64,000 nt of DNA, from NCBI GenBank assembly GCA_033442325.1, contig JAWQFM010000001.1:3479413-3543412 (forward strand). Direction: 5' to 3'. The translations under genes were made by a program, and so were the position numbers. Below, in pieces: positions 12,932 to 63,876 of the stretch. The stretch's first letter is position 1; each line of letters opens with the position of its first letter. Origin of the DNA: Salpingoeca rosetta (Eukaryota > Protista > Choanoflagellata). The notes beneath the pieces were generated by a model. That model was not told the DNA's origin and made no database searches. It was given only the letters and a program-made list of their open reading frames with translations.

Positions 12932-19764
<6,833 letters not shown>

Positions 19765-36669: not shown

Positions 36670-37565
36670 GAGCTGCGATGAAGGTTGTGCGCGCCGCCCT
36701 TGCTTTGCCCATAACACACACACATACACACACACATATACACATATACATACATACACACACAAACATACATACACACACATATACACATATCCATACA
36801 TACACACACATACACACATTCACACGCACACACACCACAGGTTGAGAAGGTGCGCGGGCTGCTGAGTGCACACAGCGGCGACGCGTCCGGTGTTGAAGTG
36901 TCATCTGTGGACGGATTCCAGGTGAGCACACGCTGGTGCTGCTGTTGGCCGTCTCCTCACAGCTGCAGGGCCATAGTGCGCGCTTGTTTGCTCATTTTGC
37001 CGCTGTCTTAGTCATTCACCAACACCTGTTGCATGTGTGTGTGTGTGTGTTGTACACGAAGGGTCGGGAGAAAGAGGCGATTGTCATCTCGCTCGTGAGA
37101 TCGAATGATGAGCGGATTGTTGGATTTCTCAGAGACTTCCGCCGCATCAACGTCGCCGTCACCCGCGCAAGGTGCGCTGGCGCGCGCGCGTGTGTGTCTA
37201 TTGTGTGTGTGCGTGTGCATGTGCAATATGTGACATGAACCCGATATGTTGTCTCACATCCCCGTGCTGTTGTTGTCACATTACGCTGTTTGCACCAGGC
37301 GCCACTTGTGCATTGTGGGCGACAGCAACACCATCACTGCTGACGAGCACATGGATTCCTTGGTCAACTATCTCAACGCGCATGCCGTGGTGCGTACCAG
37401 CCTCTCCGATTTGTTTGTTGTCACCTCCAGACATCTTTCTCATTTGTTCCACTCGCTCTCCTGTCACACTCACTGTCTTATCTCCCACACTCACACTCAC
37501 ACTCACACGCACTCTCGCACGCTCACTGCCTTTGTTTCTCTCACTCATGCACGCACACACATTTA

Positions 37566-37605
<40 letters not shown>

Positions 37606-37633
37606 CACACGTACGCACACATACACGCGCACA

Positions 37634-37664
<31 letters not shown>

Positions 37665-38492
37665 CACCACCGCAGCTTCGAACAGTGCATGATTACGACG
37701 AGGCACTGGCTGTTGTTGGCGGCCAGCAGCAGCAGCAACAGGGCAAGAAGGGCAAGAAGCCGAAGAAGACGAAAGCACAAAAGGAGGCAGGAGAGAAGGG
37801 CAAAGCCGCAGATGCGGACAAAGCGGAACAGAATGTGCTGCGACGAGCCCATTTTGAATCGCAGATCACGGCTTTCCTTCGCGGCAAAGCAATCACTCCA
37901 AAGACAGCCATCACAACCACAACCACCACCACCACCACCAGCAGCAGCAGCAGCAGCACCGGCACAGCGCGTTCGACCACGGCTGTCGTGGAGGGAGATG
38001 CGCTGGTGTTTCCGCCGTCTCTATCGTCATATGAGCGCATGCTCGTGCACGACATCTGCAGCGATCGTGGACTTGAGCACGAGAGTACGGGGGAGGGGCG
38101 AGGCAGGCGTGTTGTTGTTCGCCGGCCAATGAAGAAAGGGAAGGGTGATGATGCAGAAGATCAAGGGAAGGAGGCCAGCGCACGTGGTGGTGATGGCGCA
38201 AGTGGTGATGTTGACGATGACGATGATGATGCCGTGGTGAAGAGGCGACTGGGCCGAAGAGCGGTGAAGCAGCAGGCGCCGTCGGTGGAAGTAGGGTGTG
38301 ACCATGTTGGCGACGGTGCTGATGGTGACGATGGCAAGGGCGAGGACGATGGTGCTGTTGCGTCCGCAGGAGCAGCTGGTGCGACCATACGACACATTCT
38401 GGGCGGCGATGAAAGTCAGGAGGAACAGAAGGCCACTGGAGAGAGGGGCGTCAAGCAGCAGTCACGTGATGACGAGCTGACAACCAAAGGCA

Positions 38493-38544
<52 letters not shown>

Positions 38545-38799
38545 AGAAGGGGAGACGGAGATTCAGCGACTGTTGCGAGAGCGACGGGAGCGATTGCAGG
38601 CGGAGCGGGAGGAAAGATTGCAGAAGCAGAAAGAGCAAGCACAGCAGCAGCAGCAGCAGGGCGGGAAGAAGGGGAAGAAGAGCAAGAAGAATCAGCAGAA
38701 GAGCAGTGGTAGCTCTCGCGGATACAAGCTTGGTGGTGCATCGTCGTCGTCATCATCGTCATCAACGCCTGCTGCCACTGCACGGCGACGGCAGCAGGT

Positions 38800-38836
<37 letters not shown>

Positions 38837-38888
38837 ATTGCGCCGTGCGAACACTTGCACTCGGTTGTTTCTCCTTCACTCACATATG

Positions 38889-38953
<65 letters not shown>

Positions 38954-39576
38954 GCGCGCGCGCAGGGCGGTGCTGTGGATGTGGATGCGCTCGCTGCTGC
39001 AATTGAGGACCCCAACATGATGCAATCCGACCTGGATCGCATGCTTCCGCACGAGAACCGCGTGCAGCGAAACCCATTTATCGACGCCGCTGCGTACGTG
39101 CGTGCAGGCAACATTGAGCGCGGGCCCAAGCGCCATCCAACCAAGGCCGACGTCAAGCGCGACCAACTCAAGAAGTGCGTCCTTCATGCACGTGTGACCG
39201 TGTGAACTGTATGGTGCGCACACGATACATTTTCCTCAATTTAATTGATCATGACCTCAGCTGTCAGAGTTTGGACGTTTGTCTCATCAACCCCTTGCCA
39301 CCCGCCCACACTAAAACAGTACTTCTTTCTCCCTCGCTGACATTTACGTATTCCTGTGCTTGTACTTGTTGTATCCCTTGCTATGTGTATCTGTGTGTGT
39401 GTGTGTGTGTGCTTGTGTATCTCAACAACAGGAAACTGCAGCAGAACATTGGCGCCAAGTCCTCCACGCGAAAGCCAAAGGAACCACAGCAGGGAACCAG
39501 CAGTGGCACTGGTGGAAGTAGCGGCAGTAGTCGTGGTGGTAAGAGGGGCAGAGGCCGGGGAAGGAGGAGGAAGTGA
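31928..39576 (+). CDS. IGHMBP2: SF1 Upf1-like helicase IGHMBP2/SMUBP-2 with an R3H domain; spans an assembly gap
   Basis: IHGPPG|[74 protein letters not shown]3[27 protein letters not shown]. Confidence 0.93.
33648..33747. other. Assembly gap (100 N)
   Basis: N run. Confidence 1.
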
Positions 39577-39869
39577 AGCTGATGGGGAGGTGGATGAAGG
39601 TGCCGCGACGATGAAGCAACGTGTCGTAGTTGCGTGTATTTGCAAGGTAGCGAGGAGAGGGAACACAGTCAAAGAGTAACACAGCGACCAACTGTTGGGC
39701 ACTGTGCTAAATCCAACGCATACATAACTAACGGACGAACGAGCAAGCAGGAACCCGGGTGCAAGGTTGGCGCATAAAACAAACACAGAAAGAGCAAGTA
39801 AAAGGGGGGATGGGGGATGGAACCAACAGACATCATCAGGTAGGGAGGGGGTGGAACAGGTGTGGTCGC

Positions 39870-39900
<31 letters not shown>

Positions 39901-39907
39901 GCAGCAG

Positions 39908-39959
39908 CAACAGCAGCAGCAGCAGCATCCAACACTCAGCGTCAACACATAACGATCAC
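39908..39959 (+). repeat. Left copy of a 52-bp direct repeat (preceded by a CAA/CAG tract)
   Basis: caacagcagcagcagcagcatccaacactcagcgtcaacacataacgatcac, identical to 43228-43279. Confidence 0.95.
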
Positions 39960-40085
39960 CATCTTATCACGACAAGACACAATGGCGAGGAGCGAGGAAC
40001 ACGATTGGCAACACCACGCCATGTTCTTGGAAGCTTTGTTATGAAGCACTTGCGCGTGGGCACTCGACATGACGTCACGCAACAT

Positions 40086-40189
40086 GCGACATTACACACC
40101 ACAAGTGTGAGAAGTCATACGCTAGACCGTACGACATTCCACGCCACAGGTGTGAGATGTCATACGCTAGACCGTGCGACATTACACGC
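40086..40189 (+). repeat. 45-bp tandem repeat, ~2.3 copies
   Basis: gcgacattacacaccacaagtgtgagaagtcatacgctagaccgt / acgacattccacgccacaggtgtgagatgtcatacgctagaccgt / gcgacattacacgc. Confidence 0.9.
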
Positions 40190-40391
40190 GCGCAATTTGC
40201 AACGAGTGAAGGACATATTTGACGGAGCGCAAAGTCGGGTCCTTTTTCTCCATCAAAAGTGCCTTTTTCTCCAATACTTCGTCTGCCCTTGTAACCCATC
40301 CCCCCAGTCCCTCTTGCTGCGCCCGTTTTTGATCTTGTCGCTAACAGTAACTCGCTTCTCTCTCCTCCTTCTTTCTTCCCCAAGGGTAGAC

Positions 40392-42578
40392 ATGACGTCG
40401 ACGGTGCTGTTCGTGGGCGGGGTCATCGAGGACGACGACCACATTGTGTATCGTGTCGATGCTGACAAAAGCGAGACCGCCGAGACGCCGGCGCGTCGAG
40501 CGAAGCCGTCGCCATCCCCTTCAGAGGGTGAGGCACTGGAGGTCCGACTCAGGCCCCTTGCCAACCTCATCAGCACGCTGCCGTTGCCAGACCTCAAGGC
40601 CTTTGCCAAGGCGGGCCTCACAGGCGATGTTGCGCATGCCCGCACACTTCTCGCAAAGGCGCACGATCCCGCCGTGCATGCCCAGGCTCCGCTGGACGCA
40701 GCCCTCGCAGCACTTCGCGCGTGCGCTCTTGAAGCTGACACCGTTGTCACCGTGGGCTCCAGCCTCGTGACCATGCAGTCGCTGGAGCCTGGCCTGGCGA
40801 ATGAGATGGTGGACGTTCTCTGCACGCGTACCTTGTACACTATCCTCGCGCAGAACCTGCTAGCCGCATACATCAACGTTGTGACGGGCGCTGTCCTGTC
40901 CACGAGCGTGTTCCACGCCATGCTCAAGCCGCCAGCGTCACAGTCCAAAGCAGCCGTTCCGCAGAGCCAGCTTGAGGCCCGCGTGACCTTCTTTTTGGCC
41001 AAGGACGTCAAGCACGGATCGCAGGGTGCCAAGTTTGCCAAGCATACGCAAGCAGCACTGCACTTTCTCGACGAGGAGGGCTGGCAGATTCCAGCGCGCC
41101 TTGTCTTCTACTACGTGAATGAAGAGCCCCTGAAACTACCGCAACTCTTTAGCGGCTGGCGCGACATGGACGCAGGCGTCGCTCAGGCGTGGGCAAGGCA
41201 TGCGCTGCATCACGTCAAGCCCGCCGCCCTCCAGGCCGGGCTGAAGCAACAAGACGGACTCAGCTTTGCTGTGGCTGACTCACGCACCCGCGTCTTCGTG
41301 CTTGCTTCGTGGGATACCACTCTGCATGCAAAGGCCAAGGAAGTGCTGGCCGGCATGCCGTCGCAGACCATGTTGGGCCAGGAATGGTCCGAGGCCGTGG
41401 TGCCGCCCGTTCCCTCTGCGCCTGTCGGTCTAGAACGGGCACAAACCGTCTCGTCGTTTCGCGTCCGCAGCCCTCCCGTTCCCAAGCCGGCCCTGAAACC
41501 TGCAGAGGCGGCACGGTTGGCGCGGCTGTGCTCCGTGTTGCGCGATTGGAGGGACCGCAACTTCGTGGAGACCACGGGACAACTGGACAGCCGCAGCTAC
41601 GTTGGCCAGGCGCGAACACTGCTCTTTGAGCGCTTGCGCGAAGTTCCCGACGATGGGCAAGACGCTGCCACCCGGCTGTGCGACATTGGCGTCGCGGAAG
41701 GGCCTGTGACCAAGCCTCTGTTCGACATGGTCCGGCTGCTGGACGAAGTGGGCATGTGGGGTGGGAGGTCGCTGGCGCACTGTCTGTGGTCCTTCCTCCT
41801 CGCCCTCTGGCGGCCCAGCGTGTTGTTGACCCCGCTGGGTGATTCAGACGACCGCACGCCCATGGAAGTCGGCAGCTGCGTGGAGGTGCATGGCGAAGCC
41901 GCAAGCGGGCGCTACGTCAAGGTCTTTGCGGAGACAAGTGAGTCCCTCGGGCGCAAGACAGACGGCAATTTTATCGAAGACGGTATCGATGCCCTGTTGC
42001 CTCCCAAGCCTGACGGATGCCTGCGACTCTACCATGCGACGAGCCTTAACAGCGTAACAAACATTGTGAGATGTGGCATTAACCTCAACATGTGCCTCGA
42101 CACATCCGACTTTGGCAAGGGCTTCTACATGACGCCCAACATCGACTGTGCCGTGCACTTCCTTGTTACGGAGGCGCCCCCGGAAAACCATCATCACCCG
42201 CGCGCGCTGCTGGTTGTGGATGTTGACCAGACTGGCGTCGACGCCATGCCAGAGCTGCCAGAGCTGCGCGATGGTGGCGCGATCTGGGAATCAGTGGTCA
42301 GCACCATGCGAGGGCAGCTTGCTGACAACGCGGTTGAGCCACTCTCTGACCAGCTGGCTGAGAGGCTTGACGCAGCTTCGGTGCTGGTTGGGCCCCTCAC
42401 AACACGGCAAGAAGGGCGCCGCCACTTGGGTCCGATGAACGATACTGCAGTCAGCTGGGAGCAACGTGCCTTTGTCAAAAGGCGCTCGTGCCGTCTGGTG
42501 GACCCGTCCCGCTATCTTGCTGGGATCGAGGACACGCTAGTCCGGGCTCTTCACGTTGTGCGCTTGCTTCCAGCCTAA
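40392..42578 (+). CDS. Intronless 728-aa protein with a C-terminal DUF3990-like (ADP-ribosyltransferase-fold) domain
   Basis: Long GC-rich ORF from ATG 40392. LYHATS..IVRCGINLNMCLDTSDFGKGFYMTPNIDCA fits the YHG/T..DFGxGFYxT signature. N-terminal ~540 aa not recognised. Confidence 0.75.
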   Translation: MTSTVLFVGGVIEDDDHIVYRVDADKSETAETPARRAKPSPSPSEGEALEVRLRPLANLISTLPLPDLKAFAKAGLTGDVAHARTLLAKAHDPAVHAQAPLDAALAALRACALEADTVVTVGSSLVTMQSLEPGLANEMVDVLCTRTLYTILAQNLLAAYINVVTGAVLSTSVFHAMLKPPASQSKAAVPQSQLEARVTFFLAKDVKHGSQGAKFAKHTQAALHFLDEEGWQIPARLVFYYVNEEPLKLPQLFSGWRDMDAGVAQAWARHALHHVKPAALQAGLKQQDGLSFAVADSRTRVFVLASWDTTLHAKAKEVLAGMPSQTMLGQEWSEAVVPPVPSAPVGLERAQTVSSFRVRSPPVPKPALKPAEAARLARLCSVLRDWRDRNFVETTGQLDSRSYVGQARTLLFERLREVPDDGQDAATRLCDIGVAEGPVTKPLFDMVRLLDEVGMWGGRSLAHCLWSFLLALWRPSVLLTPLGDSDDRTPMEVGSCVEVHGEAASGRYVKVFAETSESLGRKTDGNFIEDGIDALLPPKPDGCLRLYHATSLNSVTNIVRCGINLNMCLDTSDFGKGFYMTPNIDCAVHFLVTEAPPENHHHPRALLVVDVDQTGVDAMPELPELRDGGAIWESVVSTMRGQLADNAVEPLSDQLAERLDAASVLVGPLTTRQEGRRHLGPMNDTAVSWEQRAFVKRRSCRLVDPSRYLAGIEDTLVRALHVVRLLPA

Positions 42579-42958
42579 GCTGAAGGGGGGGGGGGAGGAG
42601 TAAGGGGAAGGGCGCATTAATGACACGGAGAGGCTTTGTTTCACTGAAGGGGCTGGACAGTTCCTTCGACCATGTACGTTCTTACGTTGCACTGTTGGAC
42701 TACTGTTTGTTGTTTCACTTTGATTGAGATGTGGATGTTGGAGTATGTATACTGATGCATGCGTGGGCAAATGTAACGAGACACCACGAGTCAACACTCG
42801 ATGACTGGTAATCCATTTGCACGTCACCAAGTCATCGTATTCTTGACTTGGAACGTCGTGTTCTGCATTCTCGGCACCTTGTTCGTGTTAATCGTTGTCA
42901 TGTATCTGAGTCACCAACAATGCGGTTGTGTTTGAACAGACGCGCATGCGGTTTCAAT

Positions 42959-43046
<88 letters not shown>

Positions 43047-43146
43047 NNNNNNNNNNNNNNNNNNNNNNNNNNNNNNNNNNNNNNNNNNNNNNNNNNNNNN
43101 NNNNNNNNNNNNNNNNNNNNNNNNNNNNNNNNNNNNNNNNNNNNNN
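43047..43146. other. Assembly gap (100 N)
   Basis: N run. Confidence 1.
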
Positions 43147-43174
43147 CAACAAGAACAACAACAAGAACAACAAG

Positions 43175-43227
<53 letters not shown>

Positions 43228-43232
<5 letters not shown>

Positions 43233-43279
43233 GCAGCAGCAGCAGCATCCAACACTCAGCGTCAACACATAACGATCAC
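43228..43279 (+). repeat. Right copy of the 52-bp direct repeat (preceded by a CAA tract)
   Basis: Identical to 39908-39959. Confidence 0.95.
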
Positions 43280-43493
43280 ATGCAAGCCTACTCCACTCAT
43301 AACCTCATAACCTCAAACAAGTGACGAGGTGACGACAAGCGTGTTCGTATGCATGAACAACAACGACGAAGCGGCAAAGACAACAACAAACAGCGATGAT
43401 GTGGGTGCCGATTAAGATGAAGAAACTGGCACTGGCAGAGACAAAGCCAGAGGCAACGACAAAGACCAACGACAAATAACACAGACGGCGAGA

Positions 43494-45035
43494 CTAGTTG
43501 AGGGCACTGTAGTCACTGCGCGACCGGCGGAACATGCGGTAGAGAACAGCAAGGCCGATGCACGCGAGCGCAACGGTGACGGTGACGCCAGCAACGATGC
43601 CTGCCTTTGGGATGAGCCGAGTGGCGCCTGGGCCTTGCTCCTCCGTTGCATCGTGCAGCAGGAAGCCAAGCGTCCAGCCAACATCCCGCCCGTTGACCTC
43701 CGACACAAACTCAATCTGCTTCGAGTCCTGACCAAACTCGTAACCGTGGGTGAGGATGGTGTTGACGTAGTGGCCCTGGAAGCAGTAGTCCATGAGGAAC
43801 TTGTCTGGGATAGTCGGCGATTCTCTCCGCAACTGCTGCGCCGTCTCTGCGCACACGCTGTCTGCTGCTGCGACAATGGCCGATGGCGGCATGTGCCACC
43901 CGCTGTTTTCGCCCGCCGTGCACCCGGGCAGACCTTTGGTGGAGCACAGGAAGTCAATCACGTAGTAGTAGCCCGAGAAGGCGAAGAAGCGCTGGTCGGG
44001 GACGGCGGGCTGGCCCGTGCCCATGCGAGGCGGCAAGCCGTCGTCAAGCAGCAGCGCCGTCTGCTGCTGGCACGCGGTGGTGTCCGAGGTGCCCTGCAGT
44101 GTGGCGGTGAGGATGGTGTCGTCAAAGTGGATGGTGTTGGAGCAGTAGTCCGACCGCAAGAAGGCAATGTCGTCCTGCGTGAGGTTGGTGGCAAACCCGG
44201 TTGGAAGGCACGGGTAGTCGACGGTGACGTGCGGGCCTTTGCTCGTTGCCTGTTGCAGCGCCGTAGCGTGCATGCGCTGGCGGGCCGCGTTCATGCCGTA
44301 GCACAGGTACGAGTGCGTGTACAGGTAGTAGTCGTTGCCAAAGAGGTGCAGGTGCAGCTGGTCCTCTGGGGAGAGCTTTGAGTACGTGCTCGGGTCGTCA
44401 AAGGTGATTTGTGTGGATGCACCGCCCAGGTCGAGGGCGCCCGCCGTGGTGTCGTGCTGCTTGGACTTGTGCGTGGGCAGGATTTGGTCGGCGACGTAGT
44501 TGGTGGTGATCCAACCAAACCCACCCTCGAGCGAGCCTGGCAAGATGATGGCGGAGGAGCGGGCGCCGTCGAGCGTGGAGTTGCGGAAAAGCTGCTCGCA
44601 GGCGTCCAGGATGGCCTGCGCCTTGGCGGGGTCGTTGTTGTGCATGACGCGCATGCCCGCGGTGGAGCGGAGGTAGATTGGGGTCGTGGGGCGGGCGTTC
44701 TCCGGAAGCGCGGCGGCGGCCTTGCGCAGGCAGTCTGCCAGGGAGTTTGCGCTGTCCTGTGGGGTGTCGTACATGCTAATGCCTTTGTCCGTGGAGCACG
44801 AGAACTTGACCTGGTTGACTCGGGGCACCTCGTACACCTCGGTGCTGACGTTGGCCCTCGTGGGCCGCCACGTGTAGATGAGGAATTCCGAGTGGGAGGA
44901 GCCTGCGTCGACGACGACGGCGTACTCGTACTGTGGCTGCTTCTTCATTGCGCTGTAGCCAATGACCACGGCAAGGGCAACGACGCTCAGCAGCGTCACC
45001 GCCACCGCCGCAAACGCACCCCGCGTCCACTTCAT
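43494..45035 (-). CDS. ENTPD: Ecto-NTPDase/apyrase (GDA1/CD39 family), N- and C-terminal TM helices, intronless, 513 aa
   Basis: ACR1 DAGSSHS, ACR2 STAGMR, ACR3 EGGFGWITTNY, ACR4 DLGGASTQI, ACR5 WTLG; LYTHSYLCYG. Confidence 0.95.
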   Translation of the reverse strand: MKWTRGAFAAVAVTLLSVVALAVVIGYSAMKKQPQYEYAVVVDAGSSHSEFLIYTWRPTRANVSTEVYEVPRVNQVKFSCSTDKGISMYDTPQDSANSLADCLRKAAAALPENARPTTPIYLRSTAGMRVMHNNDPAKAQAILDACEQLFRNSTLDGARSSAIILPGSLEGGFGWITTNYVADQILPTHKSKQHDTTAGALDLGGASTQITFDDPSTYSKLSPEDQLHLHLFGNDYYLYTHSYLCYGMNAARQRMHATALQQATSKGPHVTVDYPCLPTGFATNLTQDDIAFLRSDYCSNTIHFDDTILTATLQGTSDTTACQQQTALLLDDGLPPRMGTGQPAVPDQRFFAFSGYYYVIDFLCSTKGLPGCTAGENSGWHMPPSAIVAAADSVCAETAQQLRRESPTIPDKFLMDYCFQGHYVNTILTHGYEFGQDSKQIEFVSEVNGRDVGWTLGFLLHDATEEQGPGATRLIPKAGIVAGVTVTVALACIGLAVLYRMFRRSRSDYSALN

Positions 45036-59770: not shown

Positions 59771-59839
<69 letters not shown>

Positions 59840-61344
59840 ATGTGGTGCGCAATCGCTTTCCGGTCGTGTGAGCTGTGGCTGTCATTCTTGTTGGTTTGAA
59901 GCTCGCATGTTCACACCCGCCATCCACCCATACCTCGTGTCACCTCACTCCACACCCTGTCCACCCGCACCCTGCTATCTCTCACCAGTACATTGTTGAG
60001 TGCGACGGGGACACGCTGCTTGCGCGGTATCTTGGCATGTACCGCATCACCGTGCACGAGAAGGAGACGTACATGGTCGTGATGAACTCCATCCGGCCCG
60101 TTGGCATCCCCACACACCGCCTGTACGACCTCAAGGGGTCGAAGGTCGACAGAAAAGCCAGCGACAAGGAACGTGCAAAGGACCTACCGTGTCTCAAGGT
60201 ACGAGAGGGAAGGTGAAGGTGTTGTGGTGGCTGGCGTGGCGGGTCAGGGTTAGAGTGGTTCATGCGCCAACATACACTTGAGTGAACGCCATCATCATCA
60301 TCATCATCACGTGTGTGTGTATGTGTTTGTGTGTGTGCGCGCGTGTGTGTGTGCGTGTTTGTGTTGATGTGTGTGCTTGTGCTGGTGTGTGAGAGTGTGG
60401 CTATGTGATTGTGTGTATGTGTGTGAGCGTCATAAGTCCCAACGTTCTTGAAAGTCGCTGGCGCCTACTCACCCTTCACCCCGCTGCGTTCGCGATGGCC
60501 GCACATCAAAAGGACATTGACTTTGAGGAAGCGCAGGAGCGGCTGTATCTTGGCGGCGACACCGAAACATTCAAGGAAACACTCAAGCGCGATGTGCAGT
60601 TCCTTGAGAAGCACAATCTCATGGACTACAGTCTGCTCGTGGCCATCCACGACTGCAACGAGCAGGTCGCTTGTCCTTGCGTACATGCGCGTTGAGTGTG
60701 TGTGTGGATGTGGATGTGGATGTGTGAGAGAGAGGATGAATGTGTGCGTGTGCGAGTGCGTGTGTGAGTGTGTGTGCGAGTGTGTGAGAGAGTGTGTGTG
60801 TTTGTACGCCATGCTGCGTTTCTGTATCCTCACTCATCCTCTCCGTGTCCTGCGGTGTGCTGCTCCGCCACCACCCGAAACATGCAGACGCCTGGCGAGA
60901 TTGACCGGGATGTCGATGTGTATCACGTTGGTCCACACGCCAAAGACCTGAAGGCGGACCCGAAGCGCCTCTACTTTATCGGCATCATCGATGTGCTCAC
61001 CGTCTACAGCACCCGCAAACGCGCAGCGCACGCGGCGAAAACAGCGAAACACGGAGCGGTCAGTCGTGTGTGTGTGTGTGTGCGCGCGCGCGCGTGTGTG
61101 TGAGTGTGTGTGTTGTTTGTGTGTGTGTGTGTGTAGGTGTAGGTGCGCGCGCGTACTGCTTGTGGCAGCAACAAAATTTCTGTGAGTTTGCTTGCTGCTC
61201 TTACACCACACCTCACTGCCACGCTCTTGCCCCCCCCCCGCCTTCTCCTCTTTTCACGGTTATCAGCGTGCGGAGATCTCCACAGTGAAGCCTGACCAGT
61301 ACGCAAAGCGACTGCTTGAATTTGTGTCGTCCATGTTGGCGTGA
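58394..61344 (+). CDS. PIP4K2: Phosphatidylinositol 5-phosphate 4-kinase type 2
   Basis: [113 protein letters not shown]. Confidence 0.96.
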
Positions 61345-62070: not shown

Positions 62071-62152
<82 letters not shown>

Positions 62153-63876
62153 GGGGCGCAATCGCTTTCCGGGCGTGTGAGCTGTGGCTGTCATTCTTGT
62201 TGGTTTGAAGCTCGCATGTTCACACCCGCCATCCACCCATACCTCGTGTCACCTCACTCCACACCCTGTCCACCCGCACCCTGCTATCTCTCACCAGTAC
62301 ATTGTTGAGTGCGACGGGGACACGCTGCTTGCGCGGTATCTTGGCATGTACCGCATCACCGTGCACGAGAAGGAGACGTACATGGTCGTGATGAACTCCA
62401 TCCGGCCCGTTGGCATCCCCACACACCGCCTGTACGACCTCAAGGGGTCGAAGGTCGACAGAAAAGCCAGCGACAAGGAACGTGCAAAGGACCTACCGTG
62501 TCTCAAGGTACGAGAGGGAAGGTGAAGGTGTTGTGGTGGCTGGCGTGGCGGGTCAGGGTTAGAGTGGTTCATGCGCCAACATACACTTGAGTGAACGCCA
62601 TCATCATCATCATCATCACGTGTGTGTGTATGTGTTTGTGTGTGTGCGCGCGTGTGTGTGTGCGTGTTTGTGTTGATGTGTGTGCTTGTGCTGGTGTGTG
62701 AGAGTGTGGCTATGTGATTGTGTGTATGTGTGTGAGCGTCATAAGTCCCAACGTTCTTGAAAGTCGCTGGCGCCTACTCACCCTTCACCCCGCTGCGTTC
62801 GCGATGGCCGCACATCAAAAGGACATTGACTTTGAGGAAGCGCAGGAGCGGCTGTATCTTGGCGGCGACACCGAAACATTCAAGGAAACACTCAAGCGCG
62901 ATGTGCAGTTCCTTGAGAAGCACAATCTCATGGACTACAGTCTGCTCGTGGCCATCCACGACTGCAACGAGCAGGTCGCTTGTCCTTGCGTACATGCGCG
63001 TTGAGTGTGTGTGTGGATGTGGATGTGGATGTGTGAGAGAGAGGATGAATGTGTGCGTGTGCGAGTGCGTGTGTGAGTGTGTGTGCGAGTGTGTGAGAGA
63101 GTGTGTGTGTTTGTACGCCATGCTGCGTTTCTGTATCCTCACTCATCCTCTCCGTGTCCTGCGGTGTGCTGCTCCGCCACCACCCGAAACATGCAGACGC
63201 CTGGCGAGATTGACCGGGATGTCGATGTGTATCACGTTGGTCCACACGCCAAAGACCTGAAGGCGGACCCGAAGCGCCTCTACTTTATCGGCATCATCGA
63301 TGTGCTCACCGTCTACAGCACCCGCAAACGCGCAGCGCACGCGGCGAAAACAGCGAAACACGGAGCGGTCAGTCGTGTGTGTGTGTGTGTGCGCGCGCGC
63401 GCGTGTGTGTGAGTGTGTGTGTTGTTTGTGTGTGTGTGTGTGTAGGTGTAGGTGCGCGCGCGTACTGCTTGTGGCAGCAACAAAATTTCTGTGAGTTTGC
63501 TTGCTGCTCTTACACCACACCTCACTGCCACGCTCTTGCCCCCCCCCCGCCTTCTCCTCTTTTCACGGTTATCAGCGTGCGGAGATCTCCACAGTGAAGC
63601 CTGACCAGTACGCAAAGCGACTGCTTGAATTTGTGTCGTCCATGTTGGCGTGACAGCAGCACGCCCACCAGTGGTGTTGGTGGTGATGAATTGCTCCTTG
63701 CTTCATATCACAATGTGTTGTTCCCGTTCATGGTTTCTTTGTTGACTCGACGGTGGTGACGCAGGGGACGGGGAGAGGGAACAGAAAGTGTACTTTACAT
63801 TGAGAATCACTGAAGAAGAAACGCCAATCAACAGCAACGGCAACGGCAGTGGCTCTGGCAGGGCAGCGAATGGCAG

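Follow-up and report, generated by a model that had tools for sequence, protein, structure and literature searches.

The choanoflagellate Salpingoeca rosetta has a block of DNA, carrying one gene with an ADP-ribosyltransferase-like domain, that is bracketed by a long direct repeat and situated between two genes oriented tail to tail, those of an R3H-domain protein and an NTPDase. This raises the question of how the block came to lie there, and whether it is a mobile element, a retroposed gene, an old resident of the site or a host gene that has moved. A related question is whether the repeat is real, as an assembly gap adjoins its right copy. The window analysed is a stretch of 64,000 nucleotides, and the positions given below are those of the window. 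The features of the locus are as follows.

37172 to 39205, plus strand: last long exon and stop codon of the left neighbour, an R3H-domain protein (Pfam R3H, E 2e-13), termed IGHMBP2 in a preliminary description of the locus.
39869 to 39959, no strand: left copy of the direct repeat, consisting of (CAA)n(CAG)n and then a 34-mer at 39926-39959; the exact 52 bp are 39908-39959.
39960 to 40283, plus strand: left end of the block, a low-copy element resembling a promoter or first exon, with the palindrome TGACGTCA and two 45-bp tandem units (40087-40176, 89% identical).
40284 to 40391, plus strand: leader from this element to the ATG, in which motifs read from the sequence (GT, then CTAAC, a pyrimidine tract and AG) may mark a putative 5'UTR intron at 40284-40386.
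40392 to 42578, plus strand: the 728-aa open reading frame, a single uninterrupted frame of 728 codons whose coding sequence has no intron.
42579 to 42960, plus strand: 3' flank and presumed 3'UTR of the open reading frame, unique in the genome by a genome search.
42961 to 43046, no strand: (TG)n tract (42961-43043) and AGA, the last letters read before the gap.
43047 to 43146, no strand: assembly gap of 100 N, of estimated length, which hides the right junction of the block.
43147 to 43279, no strand: right copy of the direct repeat, longer, with a variant (CAA/GAA)n, (CAG)5 and the 34-mer at 43246-43279; the exact 52 bp are 43228-43279.
43494 to 45035, minus strand: right neighbour, a GDA1/CD39 NTPDase (Pfam E 4e-71), annotated as 513 aa in 1542 nt, with an uninterrupted coding sequence.

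The block, at 39960-43227, is bracketed by a 52-bp exact repeat (52 of 52 positions identical), of which 34 bp are non-microsatellite. In register, the two copies are 97% identical over 91 nt (39869-39959 versus 43189-43279). The unique 34-mer is found at only these two sites in the 55-Mb genome when up to three mismatches are allowed; the control gave no hits. Both junctions were checked in Logan contigs (k=31) from four runs belonging to four studies, dated 2013-2025. The left junction, from repeat to block, is present in all four independent runs (contigs 39930/39899-39993), as is the right junction, from repeat to right flank (contigs 43250/43222-44300+). The depth of the junction contigs equals that of the unique flanks; in run X8 it is 16.4 and 15.5 versus 15.2 and 18.3. 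In run X14, the start of each junction contig falls exactly 30 nt (k-1) short of where the 34-mer ends, as happens when a single shared node continues in two different ways. Small assembly errors just to the right of the repeat, an A>C change at 43290 and eight extra letters at 43296, are corrected in all four runs. The gap itself is bridged in none of the four, and all their Logan contigs stop in (TG)n or (CAA)n. Run X10, guessed to be RNA, covers the spacers exactly as the DNA runs do. As both junctions are found in four independent studies at single-copy depth, the repeat is not an assembly overlap, and the annotation should retain its two copies around the gap as real.

The boundary between repeat and block at 39959/39960 is, to the nucleotide, the start of a sequence that has homologs on contig C15, which shows that target and inserted DNA truly meet there. 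Other genomic copies of the 5' element are found only on C15. One, at G000:C15:1410387-1410660, has 92.4% identity over 276 aligned nt and a single 45-bp unit; the second is 5'-truncated and inverted (1410247-1410356). The C15 copies are not accompanied by the 728-aa gene, and the first ~320 nt of the block are the only part of it with another copy. No terminal inverted repeats were found in the block, in that no inverted repeat involves the termini, the right terminus lying in the gap. Neither reverse transcriptase, transposase nor any other transposable-element protein was found in the block, nor were Rfam families, and the antisense open reading frames have no Pfam matches. The preliminary description had reported the 52-bp repeat, the 45-bp tandem units, the intronless 728-aa frame, the (TG)n tail, the gap, the NTPDase and the lack of reverse transcriptase or transposase, and all of these are borne out; the overlap or misjoin that it allowed for is contradicted by the junction data.

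Evidence that the block is an insertion comes from the closest sequenced relative of S. rosetta, an uncultured marine choanoflagellate represented by Tara metagenomic contigs. The NTPDase ortholog is present on two of these contigs, L024 and L025. Contig L024 has RPL21e, GT8 and NTPDase in the S. rosetta order. On L025, the NTPDase stop codon and the R3H C-terminus are tail to tail and ~640 nt apart; the R3H segment, at 2382-2561, has its sole match in the S. rosetta genome at 38999-39175, in the R3H C-terminus. The ~640-nt spacer on L025 contains no open reading frame or gene. Thus the block behaves as inserted DNA, because the relative has both neighbours adjacent with nothing between them, and on this point the preliminary description is upheld. 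The empty site is known from one relative, in which one metagenomic contig (L025) shows it. Between the two species the spacers can be aligned only in microsatellite, and that of the relative has a single (CAG)n tract. The perfect identity of the two repeat copies, at a time when intergenic DNA of the two species can no longer be aligned, indicates a young duplication.

The relative also has an ortholog of the block gene (74% identical in amino acids, 81.6% in nucleotides), and its coding sequence is likewise uninterrupted. It is found on contigs separate from L025, one of which is from the same assembly. Given the shared assembly and the similar divergence and GC3, L025 and the ortholog contigs are likely to be from one organism. 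No R3H, NTPDase or flanking repeat is found around the ortholog in 1.4 kb upstream and 1.16 kb downstream. The flanks of the ortholog are microsatellite-rich and non-coding and show no informative match in the window, in C15 or in the genome. Compared with the 5' element and leader of S. rosetta, its upstream region aligns for only ~50 nt before the ATG, the last ~33-50 nt being kept. A (TG)n-type tract is also present ~240 nt after its stop codon. A metagenome scan for a donor locus yielded short contigs only. At the NTPDase locus, neighbours are unrelated in the outgroups Monosiga brevicollis and a 39%-identical metagenomic choanoflagellate.

The block is probably, if by no means assuredly, the product of a recent one-off relocation of a host gene at the DNA level in the S. 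rosetta lineage, with a long target-site duplication. The relocation would have taken place after the split from the closest sequenced relative, when a piece of host DNA of ~3.2-3.3 kb entered the spacer between the tail-to-tail R3H and NTPDase genes. This piece would extend from 39960 to a point at or inside the gap, and would comprise one resident gene with its own upstream element and its 3' flank. The piece would have been taken up at a double-strand break with staggered ends, located in the (CAA)n(CAG)n tract or beside it. Once both single-stranded overhangs were filled in, at least 52 bp of the target, and probably at least 91 bp, would have been present twice, as the direct repeat. Because no second copy of the gene exists, the move would have been conservative or the donor copy would have been lost later. 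An enzyme encoded by the block would not be needed. The ~430 nt upstream of the ATG that are included in the block, with their promoter-like motifs, fit a DNA fragment better than an mRNA copy. We infer the direction of the change (insertion here rather than loss in the relative), the staggered-break mechanism and the recent date.

Several observations count against relocation. The right junction is in the gap, where there is room for a poly(A) tail or another terminal structure; the empty site comes from one relative and one contig; no outgroup polarises the event; no donor site is found; and a stagger of 52-91 bp far exceeds the 2-9 bp duplications of S. rosetta transposable elements (PMC6875170). 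That recombination between the repeats removed the block precisely from the relative is formally possible.

A genome search for a donor site or footprint found none, as there is no second copy of the gene and no third 34-mer. Contig C15 is disfavoured as a recent donor: its copy of the 5' element is 7.6% diverged, and with such divergence the chance of 52 identical bases is 0.016. The flanks of the C15 copy have no homology to the relative's locus. Integration of a circle by homologous recombination is also disfavoured, as no third copy of the 34-mer exists in the genome.

If relocation is the correct reading, a single choanoflagellate gene has here moved recently, independently of transposons and with clean limits, the target duplication being unusually long, and the filled site and a related empty site are both in hand. 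Such relocations, by which gene order is eroded, have been well documented in plants and flies only. The species is amenable to genetic work.

The nature of the gene bears on whether the block carries foreign cargo. At the amino acid level, residues ~540-728 display a DUF3990-like ADP-ribosyltransferase fold and residues ~190-341 a ferredoxin-like alpha/beta domain. Pfam DUF3990 (PF13151) matches residues 545-640 with 23.6 bits, which is under the gathering cut-off of 32.2, and the N-terminal 540 residues have no Pfam matches. A profile search with the gene family leads to hundreds of short DUF3990 proteins, and relatives found with the family profile pass the DUF3990 cut-off, e.g. P0032 with 50.6 bits and P0033 with 41.2 bits. 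A first AF2 model, made from four sequences, was unusable (pLDDT 45); the AF2 model used has a pLDDT of mostly 85-98 over residues 540-728. The top Foldseek matches of the C-terminal domain are PE-like toxins, PARP1-3 and ExoA catalytic domains, with probability up to 0.99, and VIA Z values are moderate (RhsP2 7.7, ParT 6.6, ExoA 6.3, diphtheria toxin 5.6). In an alignment of 134 sequences, the motif-1 His (H548) and the motif-2 Tyr (Y579) are nearly invariant. The third near-invariant position in this alignment, which may correspond to that of the catalytic Glu, is a Gln, Q691 in the strand 690-694. The gene product shares with DUF3990 and H-Y-E ADP-ribosyltransferase domains (PARP, exotoxin A, diphtheria toxin, RhsP2, ParT) the predicted fold over the C-terminal ~190 residues, with the His and Tyr motifs kept in the family. 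It differs from these domains in having Gln and not Glu at the third near-invariant position and ~540 residues of unrecognised N-terminus, and any ADP-ribosyltransferase activity is putative.

The gene is single copy in the S. rosetta genome. A distant paralog, 24% identical, is on contig C11. Members of the gene family are found among the transcripts of Savillea parva and Salpingoeca punica, and the P0003 contig, with a 52% amino acid homologue, has neighbours that differ from those of the S. rosetta locus. One P0003 neighbour belongs to a huge WD40-like repeat family and was discarded as uninformative on synteny. No repeats were found flanking the C11 paralog or the relatives' copies. The GC3 of the gene is 0.72, a value between those of its two neighbours, and its codon usage is host-like. 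Because the family is an old choanoflagellate one and codon usage is host-like, the gene is, judged by these sequence properties, a vertically inherited family member and not foreign toxin or defence cargo. In the annotation, the ADP-ribosyltransferase-like gene is thus to be treated as a resident family member rather than as foreign cargo. The toxin- or defence-like cargo of the preliminary description is not upheld; its ADP-ribosyltransferase-like character is. That description had also regarded a gene both single copy and syntenic in related species as evidence against a mobile element; the gene is single copy, and in the relative it is not syntenic.

RNA-mediated retroposition, with a full-length transcript reverse-transcribed at a nicked target by a non-LTR enzyme acting in trans, a long duplication and later loss of the parent gene, is an unlikely alternative to relocation. 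The long flanking duplication agrees with it, as does the defined 5' end common to the C15 copy, the inverted C15 copy being 5'-truncated; this common boundary is compatible with a 5' end defined by the transcription start and is not proof of it. SLACS has a target duplication of 49 bp. Partial SLACS/CRE-type non-LTR sequences are present in S. rosetta (PMC6875170). Elements of the CRE clade are, however, site-specific. The intronless coding sequence, noted in the preliminary description, is no evidence of retroposition, since the relative's ortholog is also uninterrupted and the absence of introns therefore predates the event; the NTPDase neighbour has no interruption either. An RNA intermediate is also made less likely by the promoter-like motifs in the upstream DNA, by a leader intron that may have been retained and by the lack of a parent copy in the genome. 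There is no visible poly(A) tail; the (TG)n tract, previously read as a retroposition tail, is probably an ordinary local microsatellite, given its counterpart downstream of the relative's ortholog.

About as improbable is a gene ancestral at the site, the right repeat being a local templated patch or slippage product and the relative having lost or moved its copy. The lack of an outgroup that polarises the difference leaves room for this, microsatellite-rich spacers are prone to repair-associated duplications, and there are other local tandem duplications in the window. But the repeat ends exactly where the C15-homologous element starts, unlike a random patch, and the relative would have had to delete the whole gene cleanly while a copy survived elsewhere. 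In addition, the 100% identity of the repeat makes it far younger than the species split.

It is very unlikely that the block represents an undescribed non-autonomous element with an ADP-ribosyltransferase-like effector as cargo, as the preliminary description proposed, belonging to a family that is still mobile. A long direct repeat does bracket the block, the orthologous site in the relative is without it, the genomic context of the gene differs in each species examined, and a perfect 52-bp repeat would allow excision of a circle. Dispersed copies of the gene are nevertheless absent from the genome, and the other copy of the block covers only its first ~320 nt, at 92% identity and without the gene. 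Also against an element family are the lack of terminal inverted repeats, of transposable-element proteins and of repeats around the paralog or the relatives' copies, and the age of a gene family with no sign of foreign origin. A still-mobile gene cassette without an enzyme of its own, if anything harder to credit, would form a circle with the gene and its promoter by recombination between the 52-bp repeats and would reinsert at microsatellite-associated breaks. If true, transposon-independent gene mobility would be operating today in a close unicellular relative of animals, and the different genomic context of the gene family in every species examined would be explained. An assembly artefact, with one repeat sequence placed twice around the gap, is extremely improbable: the right copy does start its contig directly after the gap, and that contig end has the small errors at 43290 and 43296, but in four independent runs each junction has its own continuation and reaches full single-copy depth, and X14 has the shared node.

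How the relocated block compares with known systems may now be considered. Southworth et al. (2019, PMC6875170) annotated transposable-element families in S. rosetta that code for pol or transposase and generate duplications of 2-9 bp; most are multicopy, and all but the Helitron carry LTRs or ITRs. The block is in the same genome and likewise consists of inserted DNA with a target duplication, but it has none of these families' features. It differs from a DNA transposon or MITE in being single copy, in a duplication of no less than 52 bp and in that no terminal inverted repeats are found, with the right terminus in the gap. With processed retrogenes and LINE-mediated retroposition it shares an uninterrupted coding sequence, a variable or long flanking duplication and a simple-repeat region at the 3' side; it differs in having neither a parent gene nor a visible poly(A), in its promoter-like upstream DNA and in an absence of introns that is ancestral. 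Under a model of circle formation plus homologous recombination (PMC2869330), the donor site should hold another copy of the repeat, whereas the S. rosetta assembly has no further copy.

The transposed genes of Arabidopsis reported by Woodhouse et al. (2010, PMC2869330) resemble the block in several respects. In both, what is missing from a relative's orthologous site is one ordinary host gene together with its flanks, direct repeats of >30 bp of non-transposon sequence are present without transposon hallmarks, and often no parent copy can be identified. Transposed genes of Drosophila with flanking repeats of 44-433 bp are cited in the same work (PMC2869330). Homology of the repeat to the relative's target site is conjectural here, as the spacers fail to align. 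The present case further differs from the Arabidopsis genes in that the repeat includes microsatellite and the host is a unicellular holozoan.

The window falls within scaffold GL832955.1 of the Salpingoeca rosetta assembly GCA_000188695.1, and choanoflagellates are the source of all nearest homologs of its genes. The block, the DNA between the two copies of a direct repeat, is situated between an R3H gene and an NTPDase gene, which form a convergent pair. The order of features, in window positions, is as follows.

Left neighbour, with an R3H-domain exon at its end
39869-39959, left repeat copy: a (CAA)n(CAG)n tract, then a unique 34-mer
39960-40283, 5′ element of 324 nt with two 45-bp tandem units
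Leader of 108 nt between the 5′ element and the open reading frame
40392-42578, single uninterrupted open reading frame of 728 codons
Unique 3′ flank of about 380 nt after the open reading frame
Remainder of the block: (TG)n, the 100-N gap, then a variant (CAA/GAA)n tract
43189-43279, right repeat copy: the same arrangement of tract and 34-mer
43494-45035, right neighbour, strand opposite to the left neighbour: GDA1/CD39 NTPDase

Over 52 bp the repeat copies match exactly, and an in-register stretch of 91 nt is 97% identical. In the 55.4-Mb genome the 34-mer is found at the two flanking sites only (three mismatches allowed). A microsatellite-led duplication of the same kind, in which (CAA)n(CAG)n is followed by unique sequence, is present in tandem at 17707-17900 (97 nt, 90% identical). 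Close to the window end, 59775-60074 and 62084-62383, 2309 nt apart, form a pair with 99% identity across at least 300 nt; BLAST matches suggest an extent of ~59.7-64 kb, and either tandem segmental duplication or duplication in the assembly could account for it.

Logan contigs of four sequencing runs from four studies (2013-2025) were compared with 38900-44300. Both repeat junctions are found in all four runs, the left in short contigs that pass from the repeat into the block as far as 39993, and the right in ~1.9-kb contigs that extend rightward out of the repeat into the flank. The junction contigs have the same word depth as the unique flanks and the block. Both junction contigs of run X14 start exactly 30 nt (k-1) before the 34-mer end, as expected of one shared node with two continuations. 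Thus the flanking repeat is real; the bracketing repeat of the preliminary description is solid, and the misjoin it had allowed for conflicts with two continuations in every run. Two alleles in a mixed culture are ruled out as the source of the junctions by the equal depths. None of the runs has a contig crossing the (TG)n, the gap or the (CAA)n. The start of the post-gap contig carries two small assembly errors: the A at 43290 is C in 4/4 runs, and the eight letters at 43296-43303 are missing from all four independent runs.

The closest database relative is an uncultured marine choanoflagellate present in many Tara and ENA assemblies. On one of its contigs (L024), RPL21e, a GT8 glycosyltransferase gene and the NTPDase gene follow one another in the order seen rightward of the block in S. 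rosetta, a small block of gene order kept between choanoflagellate species. A second (L025) extends beyond the NTPDase stop and reaches, ~640 nt on and on the opposite strand, an R3H C-terminus (68-69% identical) that matches the S. rosetta genome only at 38999-39175. On this one contig, therefore, the R3H and NTPDase genes appear to lie tail to tail in the relative with nothing between them. Were L025 a chimera, a chance landing on the exact next S. rosetta gene in the correct orientation would not be expected. The relative also has an ortholog of the block's open reading frame (74% amino acid and 81.6% nucleotide identity) on dozens of contigs from samples of the same kind. One of these contigs shares its assembly with L025; the ortholog contigs and L025 are likely from one organism. 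Around the ortholog, R3H, NTPDase and the flanking repeat are absent from the longest contig, with 1.4 kb upstream and 1.16 kb downstream. Intergenic DNA of the two species is not alignable, yet the repeat copies are 52/52 identical, so the duplication appears far more recent than the split between the species. Most simply, the block would have inserted in the S. rosetta lineage, with target duplication; none of the outgroups compared informs on the event.

The gene itself has choanoflagellate kin. Among 1.8 billion proteins, a profile search found full-length relatives of ~700-790 aa, some of them from transcripts of S. parva (Savillea) and S. punica (Salpingoeca). S. rosetta has a distant paralog (24% identical) of this ADP-ribosyltransferase-like gene as a long open frame on contig C11; (CA)n tracts and assembly gaps border it on either side, and its flanks share no repeat other than microsatellite:

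G000:C11:1498073-1500355 (L010 157-2439), paralog in the S. rosetta genome

A maximum-likelihood tree places the window protein together with its two metagenomic orthologs (support 100/100); this clade is sister to the S. parva/S. punica group, and the C11 paralog lies outside. GC3 is 0.72, intermediate between the neighbours' values. The gene is thus not cargo of foreign origin. Nor is the absence of introns a special sign, since the adjacent NTPDase coding sequence is also uninterrupted.

The C-terminal domain matches DUF3990 below the Pfam cut-off, but the profile search connects it with hundreds of short DUF3990 proteins. In an AlphaFold model from a 134-sequence alignment (pLDDT 78.6), residues ~540-728 are predicted to resemble PE-like toxins and PARP and exotoxin A catalytic domains (Foldseek), and RhsP2, ParT, exotoxin A and diphtheria toxin (VIA, Z 5.6-7.7). 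H548, Y579 and Q691 are near-invariant, so the pattern reads H-Y-Q in place of H-Y-E. A generic ferredoxin-like domain is modelled for residues 190-341; the N-terminal 540 residues have no Pfam match.

Genome-wide, the block matches itself only, except for its first ~320 nt. These recur in full once, on contig C15, in a copy with (CA)n before it and one 45-bp unit. Adjoining that copy is an inverted, 5′-truncated copy:

G000:C15:1410247-1410660 (L002 1361-1774), both copies, divergent, (CA)n between

Pairwise identity among the three copies is about 92%. The C15 homology starts at the exact nucleotide where the flanking repeat stops, which marks 39959/39960 as a genuine boundary where target DNA gives way to incoming DNA. 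A C2H2 zinc-finger open reading frame lies ahead of the inverted copy, and the ~300-nt element accordingly has the look of a module for a promoter or first exon; the C15 pair is possibly a bidirectional promoter module that was duplicated. Just outside the pair, a 9-nt sequence recurs in reverse-complement form (TCACCGGCC / GGCCGGTGA). The block shows no terminal inverted repeats, no Rfam family and no Pfam matches on any frame other than that of the open reading frame. It is not a repeated element, and the proposal of a new mobile element carrying an effector is mostly unsupported: the block is single copy and encodes no machinery, and its gene is not foreign.

The locus presents inserted DNA, in a single copy with a long target duplication, and neither donor copy nor self-encoded machinery. 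A DNA-level event is favoured over a transcript copy because the block contains upstream promoter-like DNA, its uninterrupted coding sequence is older than the event, and the (TG)n tail, formerly taken as a mark of retroposition, has a similar tract downstream of the relative's ortholog. In this favoured event, a staggered break would have opened beside the hairpin-prone CAA/CAG tract, where a DNA fragment would have been captured and the overhangs filled in. Retroposition in trans, with the right junction hidden in the gap, is possible; the defined 5′ end common to the C15 copy, the 5′ truncation of the inverted copy and the partial SLACS-type non-LTR sequences of the S. rosetta genome (PMC6875170) are consistent with it. 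A circle with homologous recombination, the route proposed for Arabidopsis transposed genes (PMC2869330), predicts an additional repeat copy at the donor site, but the genome has none beyond the flanking two.

The block fits no transposable-element family of S. rosetta; these have target duplications of 2-9 bp (PMC6875170). Among described phenomena, its nearest counterpart is the repeat-flanked transposed host gene known from Arabidopsis and Drosophila (PMC2869330). Of the features that define that type, an identifiable donor is missing here; shared are absence of the block from the orthologous site and flanking repeats of >30 bp of non-transposon sequence. A further defining feature is a copy of the repeat at the relative's target site; there the spacers of the two species align in microsatellite only, and the relative's spacer has a single (CAG)n tract. 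The block is classed with these known repeat-flanked transposed host genes.
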